64,000 nt of DNA, from positions 2,604,001 through 2,668,000 of the forward strand of contig OZ251229.1 of NCBI GenBank assembly GCA_965240325.2, given 5' to 3'. The translations under genes were made by a program, and so were the position numbers. This DNA comes from Rebecca billardiae RCC1528 (taxonomy: Eukaryota > Protista > Haptophyta). Under the pieces are notes generated by a model, which saw only the letters and a program-made list of their open reading frames with translations, was not told where the DNA came from and did no database searches. Within the stretch, counting starts at the first letter, position 1; each line of letters starts with the position of its first letter. This document shows positions 1-3,378 of this stretch, in pieces.

Positions 1-1799
1 CCAGACCCAGCGCCCGACGCCTCGGGCTGGCCCGCACCGCCCGCAGCCGCGTGGGCAGCGGCCGTCTCGACCCCCCACAGCGCGTGCGCGGCCCAGTGCC
101 CCGCGCAGATCGCTTCCGCCACGTTTGTGTCAAGCCGAGCGCGCCGTGTGCCGTGTGCCTCTGGCGCGGCGCCCCCGTGGTTCCGGGGCGCGTTCGCCGC
201 ACGTGGGCGCGGCTGTGCGCCCGGGCCCGCGGCGCGGCTGCGCTGCATCACCTGCCGCGCAATCAGCCGCGCGGCTGCCTTCGCAGCGCCCTTGTCGCGC
301 TGCTCGCGCGCCGTGAGCAGCGCCGCGCGCCACGTCTCCGCAGACACGCACACGGCGTCGACAGTGCGCGGCGACGCGCGGTCAGAGCCGTCCTCGGCCT
401 CGCGCCGCGCGTCGCCGTCGGCGAGCGCGCGAAGCAGCGCGTCCCGCCAGCGCGCAGTGAGCTGCGCGTTGCCCTCGAGCACCGCGCGCTCGAGCACGCC
501 CCCCGTGCGCGCACACGCGCCGAGCATCGTGGCCAACTCCGCCTCGGCCGACGATGGCGTCGCGCCCGCTGCGCCCGTGCTGCCGCTCAGCGGCCCGTAT
601 TCAAGTAGCCGCCCGGAGCGCGCGTCGAAGAGGGCGAAGCCGCCGACGCGCGCGCCGACGTCCACGGCGAGGAGGAGGCTGTGCTGCGCGCGCAGCTCGA
701 AGCGCGCGGCGCGCTCGGCGCTCAGCAGCGCCCGGCCCGAGGGCTGCTGCTCAGCCGCGGTGCCACCTGACAGACGACTGGTGGCCGGCGTGCGCGCCCC
801 GGGGGGCGCTCCTGCCCTGTGCTTCAGGTAAGTTGCCAGCAGGGGGCTGGCGCAGGCGGGCGGCGTGGGCTGCGCAGGCACGGGCAGGTCGTCGGGCGCG
901 CACGCGCTGCGCAGGGCGAGGCGGTACTGCTCGGCCGTGAGCATGCGCACCGCAGTCGGCTCGCGCGTCCGCGTCGTCGCGTGCGGGCTGCCAGCGGGCT
1001 GCGGCGCGGCATCGGCGACGGCTCGCTCGCCTGCGCGCGCCGCGCCCGGCTCGGACGCAGCCGACACCTCCGCCGCCAGCAGTGCCCAGCGCGCGCGCTC
1101 GAGCTGCTGCCGCCGCCGGGTGAGCTTCAGCCGCTTCTTGCGCCCACACCCGCGGCGCAGCTGGTGCCCCAGCTCGAGCAGCTCTGACGAAATGCGGCGC
1201 TCTCGCGAGCCGAAACTGTCGCGCCCTCGCGAGCCGCTTGTCGGAGCGTCGTCGGTCGGTGCGGCCTCCGCCTCGGGCGTGGCGGCAGCCGCGGATGCCA
1301 CGCCATCGGCCGTGTGGCGCAGGGCGGCGATGAGCGCGCCCGGAGAGACCAGATGAAGGTGCCGACGAGCGAGGGCGCCTTTGGCACATCGCACGCCCAA
1401 TTCAGTGTCTGCGGTGGCCACTGTCACGACTGCGCGCACCTCGCACGTCAGCCAGCGCACAGCGTCGACGATGACGTCGTCCGCCTTGGCGCGGGGCCCT
1501 GAGAACGCAACCGCAAGCCCGTCTGGCCTCCACGCCGCGTCGGGCACGGTGCCGTGGTCGAAGAGGAGCAGGACGCGCCCGTCGAGCGCAGTCTCGTGTG
1601 CCCACGCCGCCGTCAGATCTGCCAGCTCCGCCGGTGACCATTGGAAGCTCGTCTTGCCGCGCACGTTGTCGCCGTCGATGATCATGACATCGGCTTGCCG
1701 CAGTGCGTCCGCCTCGGCGCGGAGCCGCCGCGACGGCGGGGCCGGACGGTAGGCGAGGGCTGCGGCGGCGACGAGGACGGCAGCTGCGGCGGCCGTCAT
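1..1799 (-). CDS. N-terminally targeted NYN/PIN (YacP/Rae1-like) + RuvC-like (RNase H fold) double-nuclease protein; 3' end outside the window
   Basis: Not in the ORF track because the frame stays open from ATG 1799 to the window edge. The hydrophobic leader is MTAAAAAVLVAAAALAYRP. NYN motifs: MIIDGDNVRG, LLLFDHG, FSGPRAKADDVIV, VATADTEL. RuvC-like motifs: LLAVDVGARVGGFALF, VLEG, VSAETWRAALL, KAAARLIARQ, DTNVAEAICAGHWA. Confidence 0.75.
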   Translation of the reverse strand, partial: MTAAAAAVLVAAAALAYRPAPPSRRLRAEADALRQADVMIIDGDNVRGKTSFQWSPAELADLTAAWAHETALDGRVLLLFDHGTVPDAAWRPDGLAVAFSGPRAKADDVIVDAVRWLTCEVRAVVTVATADTELGVRCAKGALARRHLHLVSPGALIAALRHTADGVASAAAATPEAEAAPTDDAPTSGSRGRDSFGSRERRISSELLELGHQLRRGCGRKKRLKLTRRRQQLERARWALLAAEVSAASEPGAARAGERAVADAAPQPAGSPHATTRTREPTAVRMLTAEQYRLALRSACAPDDLPVPAQPTPPACASPLLATYLKHRAGAPPGARTPATSRLSGGTAAEQQPSGRALLSAERAARFELRAQHSLLLAVDVGARVGGFALFDARSGRLLEYGPLSGSTGAAGATPSSAEAELATMLGACARTGGVLERAVLEGNAQLTARWRDALLRALADGDARREAEDGSDRASPRTVDAVCVSAETWRAALLTAREQRDKGAAKAAARLIARQVMQRSRAAGPGAQPRPRAANAPRNHGGAAPEAHGTRRARLDTNVAEAICAGHWAAHALWGVETAAAHAAAGGAGQPEASGAGS

Positions 1800-1915
1800 C
1801 GCGACGCGGCGAGGCCGGCGAAGGCCGCAGCCCGGAATTCAGAATACATAATGCCGGATTCTCGGCCCGGAAGCCCGGAACAGGTCGTCTGAACTCCGGG
1901 CGATCGACGTGCACG

Positions 1916-2773
1916 ATGCTGGCGCGCGGCGTGCGTGTGCTGGCAGCAAGCCAGCGGCTGAGCAGAGCTCCCATCGGGTTGCTGCCCCGCGCGCAGGCAT
2001 GCAGAGCGCTGTCGCAGGCAAAGTCGCCGCCCCCGCCGCCGCCGCCTCCCCAGTCACCGCCGCCGCCACCCTCTGACGACTCGGAACCGAAGCCGTCGGA
2101 TCCGAAGCCGGCGGCGGCGGCGGCGCCCACGCCACCAGCAGGCGGAGCCGAGAAGGCGCCCACGGGTGGCGGCGGCGGCGAGAAGCCGCATGAGCCGCCA
2201 CGATCAGCCCTCGCGATCTCCGACGAGGATGAGAGCGCCCCGCCGCCCATGGAGTGGGAGCCGGGCGTCGCCGGCACCGTTCAGAAGGGCCTGTCCGCGG
2301 TGATCATCGCGTTCGGCGCCGCGGCCTTCGGCGTGTGCGCGTTCGGCGCGTACTGGGCGCTCTTCCCGGGCGCGAGCAGCCCGGGCGCCATCCTCGACGA
2401 CGCGCTGGAGAAGGTCAAGGTGGACCCCGAGGTGGCCGACCGCATCGGCACGCCGATCCGCTCGTTCGGCGCCGACCTCGGCGGCGGCGAGGGGCGGCGC
2501 AACTTCGTCCAGTCGTGGGACGTGCAGGCGGAGGACGGCGCGTCGGCGGTGCAGGTGAAGTTCAACGTGCAGGGCCCGCAGGGCCGCGGCATCGTGCACG
2601 TGCAGGCGCCCGCCAGCCGCAGCCGGGGCCAGTTCAACTGGATCGTCTTTGAAGACCGGAGCGGCCGGAGCCGGCAGATGATTTATATTCTGGACGAGCG
2701 GGCCAAGCTGCCGAGCGGCGGCCCGGCACCGCCGCCGCCGGCGCTGGCGGGCGCGGGCGCGGGCGGGAAGTGA
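1916..2773 (+). CDS. TIM21: Mitochondrial inner-membrane translocase subunit Tim21
   Basis: Presequence-like MLARGVRVLAASQRLSR, one TM helix, then LFPGASSPGAILDDALEKVKVDPEVADRIGTPIRSFG..GRRN..VKFNVQGPQGRG, typical of the Tim21 intermembrane-space domain. Confidence 0.85.
   Translation: MLARGVRVLAASQRLSRAPIGLLPRAQACRALSQAKSPPPPPPPPQSPPPPPSDDSEPKPSDPKPAAAAAPTPPAGGAEKAPTGGGGGEKPHEPPRSALAISDEDESAPPPMEWEPGVAGTVQKGLSAVIIAFGAAAFGVCAFGAYWALFPGASSPGAILDDALEKVKVDPEVADRIGTPIRSFGADLGGGEGRRNFVQSWDVQAEDGASAVQVKFNVQGPQGRGIVHVQAPASRSRGQFNWIVFEDRSGRSRQMIYILDERAKLPSGGPAPPPPALAGAGAGGK

Positions 2774-3284: not shown

Positions 3285-3378
<94 letters not shown>
3285..3378. repeat. (TA)n microsatellite
   Basis: About 47 perfect TA units. 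Confidence 0.99.

Follow-up and report, generated by a model that had tools for sequence, protein, structure and literature searches.

A predicted haptophyte protein that joins a Rae1-type NYN domain to a RuvC-like fold, and the algal family to which it belongs

We analysed 64,000 nucleotides (nt) of contig OZ251229.1 (positions 2,604,001 to 2,668,000 of the forward strand, assembly GCA_965240325.2) from the haptophyte Rebecca billardiae RCC1528; this whole stretch is called the window below. The first 1,799 bases of the window hold, on the minus strand, most of a gene for a predicted protein of 623 amino acids (aa). The protein combines a nuclease domain of the Rae1/YacP type (NYN) with a RuvC-like domain on one chain, and is referred to here as the fusion protein. 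Its parts are as follows, in window coordinates.

1..1799, minus strand: coding sequence of the fusion gene, codons 1-599 of a 623-codon single-exon gene, identified from the open frame, an upstream stop, the complete product (P0001), the GC content by codon position and the orthologues P0002/P0003.
1752..1799, minus strand: hydrophobic leader resembling a signal peptide, aa 1-16 (MTAAAAAVLVAAAALA), followed by Tyr17; Kyte-Doolittle maximum 2.5-2.7.
1320..1688, minus strand: Rae1/YacP-type NYN (PIN-like) nuclease core, aa 38-160, identified from a subthreshold Pfam match, conserved Asp residues and the match of an AlphaFold2 model to Rae1. The acidic residues, with codon positions checked, are D42 (in a DGDN motif), D81, D107/D108 and D131.
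900..1229, minus strand: Arg/Lys-rich helical tail of the Rae1-like module, aa 191-300, identified from the helices of the model, conservation and the alignment to Rae1.
693..899, minus strand: Ala/Pro-rich, poorly conserved linker, aa 301-369, identified from low conservation and gaps in the full-length alignment.
1..692, minus strand: RuvC-like domain of the RNase H fold (the C-domain), aa 370-599 in the window with the domain end near aa 620, identified from a family profile, AlphaFold2 and structure searches. Column counts mark as key residues D380 (nt 660-662), E442 (474-476), W490 R491 (327-332), K507 (279-281), N559 (123-125) and E562 (114-116); the sequence also has a low-complexity insert of 25 aa between K507 and N559.

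The frame runs without interruption from an ATG at 1797-1799 to base 3, a total of 599 codons, and exits via the start of the window. Beyond that edge are the final 24 codons and the stop codon, about 73 nt in all. There is an in-frame stop 15 codons 5′ of the ATG at 1799 and, barring an upstream intron, this ATG is the earliest possible start as judged from the sequence. The complete product of 623 residues was recovered by a word-indexed protein search and also from a 5.3 kb Logan contig (L001), which differs from the window at 3/1799 bases. A preliminary description of this DNA had reported a hidden minus-strand frame of about 600 codons that the track of open reading frames (ORFs) misses. 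The frame is real, with its 599 codons, 623-aa product and full-length orthologues, and it is missing from the mechanical ORF list because ORFs that exit a sequence end go unlisted. The same description had noted a signal-like leader, which is the hydrophobic MTAAAAAVLVAAAALA at the N-terminus. Its motif and domain coordinates were also right (DGDN at aa 42-45, FD at aa 80-81, ADD at aa 106-108 and TAD at aa 129-131), and all of its C-terminal motifs were found: VDVG (D380), VLEG (E442), ETWR (W490 R491) and an AEA helix (E562).

The length of the frame is weak evidence for coding. At the local GC content of 75%, chance would give approximately 0.46 open stretches of 599 codons in the six frames of 64 kb (0.008 at the mean GC content of the window), a number that leaves room for a chance open frame, or for two adjacent genes misread as one. 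The case for a coding gene therefore rests on other evidence, which contradicts that explanation. The GC content per codon position is 0.79/0.63/0.85, as is typical of coding sequence. An orthologue from Diacronema lutheri (KFE25_000145) is 646 aa long, with 43% identity over 93% of the query, and a second orthologue, from another haptophyte-like genome, is 609 aa long. The two share 42-43% identity with the fusion protein over 93-96% of its length, and orthologues P0002 and P0003 are collinear with it from the leader through to the C-terminus. The head-to-head TIM21 neighbour is shared with the genome of the 609-aa orthologue. Both domains also gave confident fold models, and at least 36 relatives, including diatom transcripts, carry both domains on one chain. 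Conservation and codon-position GC rule out a chance ORF, and we consider a spurious or composite gene extremely improbable.

In the N-terminal half, the Pfam family NYN_YacP (PF05991) is the sole Pfam match of the fusion protein. The score is 17.2-18.9 bits, which falls below the gathering threshold of 24.6. NYN_YacP is also the recurrent best Pfam match among the relatives, and one of these (P0094) lies above the threshold (28.9 vs. 24.6 bits). The fusion protein had no match in NCBIfam, and sequence searches against solved structures, both with the whole protein and with a profile of each half, returned nothing meaningful. An alignment of 28 relatives shows the following residues to be invariant or nearly so: D42, N45, R47-G-K49, D81-H82, A106-D107-D108, T129, D131 and R137-C138. 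For D81, D107/D108 and D131, conservation is complete or no lower than 90%. The hallmark of NYN_YacP proteins in the classification of the PIN superfamily is a first Asp followed by G-Y-N, together with at least four conserved Asp residues (PMC5499597). The fusion protein possesses a G-x-N variant of this motif (D42-G-D-N45), the further Asp residues are conserved, and its NYN module retains all four catalytic Asp.

The AlphaFold2 model of aa 15-305 has a predicted local distance difference test score (pLDDT) of 84.6. Of 48,161 PDB representatives, its best structural match is Rae1/YacP of Bacillus subtilis (5mq8_A, Z 13.3). The alignment takes in 145/174 residues and spans the whole Rae1 chain, at model positions 23-261, whereas the runners-up reach a Z of 8.6 at most and match long helices alone. 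Foldseek likewise placed Rae1 at the top (E 1.1e-4, prob 1.00). The NYN/YacP(Rae1)-type identity first proposed for this half is thus borne out. The likeness extends beyond the core. Two basic C-terminal helices have been described for NYN_YacP proteins (PMC5499597), and their counterparts in the predicted model are the helices rich in Arg and Lys at aa 191-300. These helices occupy segment positions 177-201, 206-235 and 268-286, and are confidently modelled at aa 191-249 and 282-300. The tail motifs QLRRGCGRKKRLKLTRRR and E-x-T-x-x-R...AE..R are conserved, and the helical tail is kept in P0002-P0005 and in the diatom relatives.

The fusion protein therefore resembles Rae1 (PF05991, 5mq8) in its first Asp with G-x-N, its four conserved Asp and its basic helices past the core. 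It differs in its subthreshold Pfam score, in reading DGDN where the family reads DGYN, in a longer tail that is broken by low-complexity loops, and in having a leader and a second nuclease-fold domain. In B. subtilis, Rae1 cuts mRNA beside stalled ribosomes and passes collided ribosomes to trans-translation (PMC12407103, PMC13622287). Translation-dependent mRNA cleavage by Rae1 is known from B. subtilis alone (PMC12407103, PMC13622287); conservation of Rae1 in cyanobacteria and plant chloroplasts is reported (PMC10351889). Given the full Rae1 layout and the intact active site, cutting of RNA is the best-supported putative role for the N-terminal half.

The C-terminal half belongs to a different fold. 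A profile built from the C-domain family matches the fusion protein with an E of 7e-42, and the AlphaFold2 model of aa 365-623 has a pLDDT of 82.7 and a predicted template modelling score (pTM) of 0.83. The order of elements is beta-beta-beta-alpha-beta-alpha-beta-alpha, which is that of the RNase H-like nucleases. In the model, D380 ends strand 1, E442 ends strand 4, and positions 559 and 562 open the last long helix. These places are presumably those of D7, E66, D138 and D141 in Escherichia coli RuvC, an equivalence that follows the order of elements and not a superposition of atoms. A structure search independent of Foldseek (VIA) gave the Z scores cited for this domain. The highest was for the RuvC of Lactococcus phage 67 (4ktw, Z 11.8), followed by the canarypox resolvase of the poxvirus A22 type (5e6f, Z 11.7), the chloroplast resolvase MOC1 (6kvn and 6is9, Z 11.0 and 9.9), the RuvC lobes of Cas9 (Z ~10), bacterial RuvC (6lw3/4ld0, Z 10.0 and 9.8), TEFM (Z 9.8) and YqgF/RuvX (Z 8.3-9.3). 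Foldseek gave its top ranks to Ydc2 (E 6e-4), the YqgF-like domain of Tex, TEFM and RuvC. A shape search of the ESM Atlas found unnamed bacterial clusters at template modelling (TM) scores of 0.82-0.86 and then viral RuvC and Pox_A22 clusters, and a language-model search pointed marginally toward the same RuvC-type families. The preliminary description had staked its case on an RNase H/RuvC fold in this half, and it is this fold that the model (pLDDT 82.7) and its matches to phage RuvC (Z 11.8), the poxvirus enzyme (11.7) and MOC1 (11.0) display.

At the level of sequence, neither the fusion protein nor any of 43 relatives matched the Pfam models of resolvases (RuvC, Pox_A22, Ydc2) or of YqgF, with E values up to 1-10. 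The phage profile phrog_1770, named as a Holliday junction resolvase, was matched by 28/43 members of the C-domain family (best E 1.5e-10) and by the orthologues P0002 (3.4e-4) and P0003 (2.8e-5), and phrog_159 (RuvC-like Holliday junction resolvase) was matched by 6/43. The fusion protein itself had no PHROG match, probably because its 25-residue low-complexity insert parts the motifs. A search with the family profile against all PDB sequences returned no resolvase, MOC1 and RuvC included. An identity as YqgF was considered and ranked below the RuvC type, as YqgF has lower Z scores (8.3-9.3), has no Pfam match, and the PHROG matches favour the RuvC type. With the RuvC-type resolvases (4ktw, 5e6f, 6lw3/4ld0, phrog_1770) the C-domain shares the RNase H fold, the element order, Z scores of 10-11.8, acidic residues at presumably equivalent structural places and, in its relatives, matches to phrog_1770. 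It differs from them in that the last acidic residue is Glu instead of Asp and the third is Asn in one clade. It also has W-R and AK..AR..AR motifs and a C-terminal V-E-R-T strand of its own, and it is fused rather than stand-alone, with no match to Pfam RuvC, Pox_A22 or Ydc2. YqgF/RuvX and the pseudo-resolvase domains of Tex, Spt6 and TEFM are of the same fold class, with Z scores of 8.3-9.8 that lie below those of the RuvC-type resolvases, and the pseudo-resolvases lack the full acidic set that the C-domain family keeps.

The likeness to MOC1 is one of fold only (Z 11.0 and 9.9), with no sequence relation found. MOC1 works in an organelle as a homodimer, with four acidic residues forming its tetrad (PMC7078210); unlike the haptophyte protein, this green-plant chloroplast resolvase is not fused to an RNase. 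The preliminary description had gone further and proposed a bacteria-derived, possibly plastid-imported dual RNA/DNA nuclease. On this view the C-domain would be a working Holliday-junction resolvase of plastid nucleoids, the counterpart of MOC1, and the NYN domain would add an RNase activity. The place of MOC1 among the top structural matches fits such a resolvase, as do the matches of the C-domain family to a phage resolvase profile and the acidic residues, which close strands 1 and 4 and open the last helix, presumably at the places they have in RuvC. The TEFM, Spt6 and Tex folds score nearly as high, however, and those proteins resolve no junctions. The third catalytic Asp is replaced by Asn559 in exactly the clade to which the Rebecca protein belongs, and neither PDB nor Pfam offers a family match to MOC1 or RuvC in sequence. 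We therefore regard a plastid junction resolvase as quite unlikely.

The replacement at position 559 is best seen against the family as a whole. The C-domain profile finds 50 relatives, mostly stand-alone proteins of 145-250 aa, from bacteria (e.g., a Myxococcota metagenome-assembled genome) and algae (e.g., Rhizochromulina marina), and several are positioned behind a metallophosphoesterase. On the sequences gathered, this is an unnamed family of bacteria and algae with no Pfam model. We found no relatives in the viral contigs searched. D380, in the motif LLAVDLG, is present in 39/39 members, E442 (motif EG) in 42/42, and W490 R491 (motif W-R) and K507 (motif AK..AR..AR) each in 43/43. In the motif T-D-A-A-E-A, which covers positions 559 and 562, Asp is found in 39/42 members and Glu in 42/42. 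The fusion protein and four other proteins, the short forms described below, have Asn559 at this third catalytic position, and all five read L-D-T-N-A-A-E-A, with an Asp two residues N-terminal of the Asn. The Asn is restricted to the short-form clade, and elsewhere in the family the residue is Asp. The C-terminal domain of this clade may therefore cut weakly or only bind.

Taken to its limit, this change would make the C-domain a pseudo-nuclease that pairs chains or holds RNA or the ribosome, comparable to TEFM and Spt6/Tex, and the whole protein a dimeric RNase of the Rae1 type with one activity. The clade-specific change from Asp to Asn falls at a metal-binding position, and TEFM (Z 9.8) and the domains of Tex and Spt6 are among the structural matches. 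Rae1 acts at collided ribosomes (PMC13622287), where a two-headed enzyme would fit. Against a dead domain, D380, E442 and E562 are still invariant, and all five short forms have the Asp two residues before Asn559. Some active RuvC domains carry His at the equivalent third position, so Asn need not kill activity. The loss of all cutting by the C-domain is, in our view, improbable.

Three of the stand-alone bacterial members, from Myxococcota and other bacteria, are proteins of 150-180 aa: P0020 (on contig L006), P0033 (L005) and P0025 (L007-L009). An ESM Atlas cluster of the bacterial relatives carries the automatic name 'YqgF family'.

Both domains together are found well beyond Rebecca. When 1.84 billion representatives were searched exhaustively with a profile, 575 proteins came back at E values up to 1e-3. 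When the fetched proteins were scored with our own profiles of the NYN domain and the C-domain, at least 36 cluster representatives carried both, and one of these clusters is from a diatom. Most of the proteins with both domains are 700-1050 aa long and have, between the NYN and RuvC-like domains, a Pfam Metallophos domain about 300 residues long, at the position occupied in the fusion protein by the linker, which matches neither domain profile. In P0004, from a TARA metagenome (L004:5176-7938), this middle domain is MPPED2-like and matches 3rl4 at 1.4e-15. In the diatom Pseudo-nitzschia pungens, MMETSP transcripts of 898 and 962 aa, which belong to one cluster (P0228 is the protein from this diatom), encode the whole three-domain chain, and the chain therefore derives from a single mRNA in that relative. 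Only five sequences are without the middle domain: the fusion protein, P0002, P0003 and P0082/P0222. In a quick, unrooted maximum-likelihood tree of the C-domain (IQ-TREE), these short forms make up one clade, with a Shimodaira-Hasegawa-like approximate likelihood ratio test (SH-aLRT) support of 96. They adjoin some of the three-domain forms with an SH-aLRT of 88, below the star threshold, a position that suggests, without proving, loss of the metallophosphoesterase. The Rebecca gene thus represents a short, haptophyte version of a larger algal family, that of the NYN-metallophosphoesterase-RuvC-like proteins. The three-domain algal proteins (P0004, P0228) have the same end domains in the same order, and most have a leader; they differ in the MPPED2-like Metallophos domain between the end domains and in having retained the third catalytic Asp. 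Taken together, these data establish a real gene with the two folds described, an architecture that is conserved, and the range of the family as given here.

The three-domain layout (NYN, MPPED2-like Metallophos, RuvC-like) is seen in P0004 and approximately 30 other proteins, e.g., P0084-P0103 and P0228. In P0004, aa 484-562 of the metallophosphoesterase match the candidate defence model PDC-S10 of PADLOC at an E of 7.6e-33, which may reflect shared Metallophos ancestry only; PADLOC had no match for the NYN or RuvC-like parts. Diatoms and haptophytes commonly have proteins with the NYN domain and tail that lack a RuvC-like domain. P0005, P0057, P0063 and P0065-P0071, from diatoms and other algae (520-630 aa), have a Rae1-like NYN domain and tail followed by about 200-270 residues, and these last residues match no Pfam family and not the RuvC-like domain.

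The leader is the part that bears on location. Comparable hydrophobic leaders are present in P0002-P0005 and in most full-length relatives, and entry of the fusion protein into the endomembrane system is likely, to judge from these sequences. The diatom NYN-only relatives have leaders that end in Ala/Ser-Phe at the likely cleavage site. Algae with red-type complex plastids typically have this kind of site in their plastid presequences. Among the full-length fusion relatives, only a minority have an aromatic residue where cleavage is predicted. The distance from the leader to the conserved, structured APPSRRLRAE helix is about 4 residues in the fusion protein and 8-20 in the orthologues.

These features could also describe a plain secretion signal on a secreted or vacuolar enzyme that degrades RNA and DNA outside the cytoplasm for the recovery of phosphorus. 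A signal-like leader with almost no spacer of the transit-peptide kind would suit such an enzyme, as would the small share of full-length fusion relatives with the aromatic residue and the usual layout of three hydrolase domains in series, of which one is an MPPED2-like phosphodiesterase. The whole layout of Rae1 is kept nonetheless, including the basic tail, which points to a specific partner and not to bulk digestion. The diatom NYN-only relatives have cleavage motifs of the plastid type, the fusion protein contains no ER-retention (endoplasmic reticulum) motif and matches no known family of secreted nucleases, and Asn at the third catalytic position is a poor fit to a scavenging DNase. We rank a scavenging enzyme second among the explanations, and as unlikely.

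The explanation that we place first, with moderate confidence, is an RNA-processing enzyme of the plastid: a single chain of 623 residues composed of a signal-type leader, a Rae1-type NYN endoribonuclease with its tail, a linker and a RuvC-like domain, with a function directed to the plastid. The leader would route the protein into the endomembrane path that also reaches the plastid in these algae. Cleavage of RNA in that compartment would fall to the Rae1-like module, whose most likely target would be mRNA held by 70S ribosomes that have stalled or collided, by analogy with Bacillus Rae1. Its RuvC-like partner would be a binder, and perhaps a cutter, of nucleic acid in branched or hybrid form, and would probably bring two chains together in the manner of RuvC-type resolvases. 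With Asn in place of the third catalytic Asp, the C-domain of the short clade could be a weak cutter or a binder only. The resolvase of plastid nucleoids ranks third and the dead C-domain fourth; the last of these overlaps with the plastid RNA-processing enzyme.

Several observations weigh against the plastid account. The spacer of about 4 residues makes a transit peptide hard to fit. The fusion protein misses the threshold of Pfam NYN_YacP (17.2-18.9 vs. 24.6 bits) and matches neither the Pfam nor the PHROG models of resolvases, and an hhalign comparison of the C-domain family with E. coli RuvC gave 1% probability, with a weak match at the first motif. A shared fold alone is no proof of substrate. 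All five short forms have Asn559 in place of the family Asp, and the equivalent change in E. coli RuvC, D138N, abolishes cleavage. The gene neighbourhoods of the three bacterial stand-alone relatives had no common theme and gave no hint of function. Finally, a search for RNA sequencing runs covering window positions 1-2400 returned none.

Both folds are of kinds already known. The novelty lies in how the domains are combined, in the spread of this architecture among red-lineage algae, in a RuvC-like family without a name and in the catalytic change specific to one clade. In full-text literature on NYN/YacP together with a RuvC-like domain, a fusion or the chloroplast, we found no account of this architecture or of the three-domain family, and the sole fusion given for NYN_YacP in a survey of the PIN superfamily is TetM-like (PMC5499597). 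The relatives are named in databases as 'hypothetical protein', 'NYN domain-containing protein' or 'predicted phosphodiesterase'. The preliminary description knew of no described fusion of the two domains. That part stands, as no paper was found; the fusion is not unique to Rebecca, as at least 36 cluster representatives have both domains.

The cutting of mRNA by Rae1 at stalled and collided ribosomes of Bacillus is a recent finding, and relatives in plastids are said to exist and are unstudied. The present analysis defines an algal family in which a module of this type is permanently joined to a RuvC-like fold, usually with a phosphodiesterase in addition. If these proteins are located in the plastid, they give direct access to the way in which plastids of major marine primary producers rescue ribosomes and control the quality of nucleic acids; if they are secreted, they are relevant to the recovery of nucleic-acid phosphorus by phytoplankton. 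The haptophyte clade, with its change from Asp to Asn, provides a natural experiment on cutting versus binding by the second domain. A wider proposal, which we hold to be rather unlikely, is that red-lineage algae (haptophytes and diatoms) have a plastid family of their own. In it, a ribosome-collision RNase of the Rae1 type, a RuvC-like nuclease that binds junctions or hybrids and usually a phosphodiesterase would link two tasks, the rescue of ribosomes that stall in the plastid and the handling of structured DNA or RNA-DNA, and the C-terminal family would correspond, in the red lineage, to MOC1.

The fusion gene lies head to head with a gene for TIM21, a protein of mitochondrial import (174 aa, window 2249-2773, plus strand), at a distance of approximately 450 bp. 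The same head-to-head pairing with TIM21 is found beside the 609-aa orthologue (L002, L003), and the two genes may have a conserved divergent promoter region in common. Further along the window, at 3285-3378, is a perfect (TA)47 microsatellite amid GC-rich DNA.

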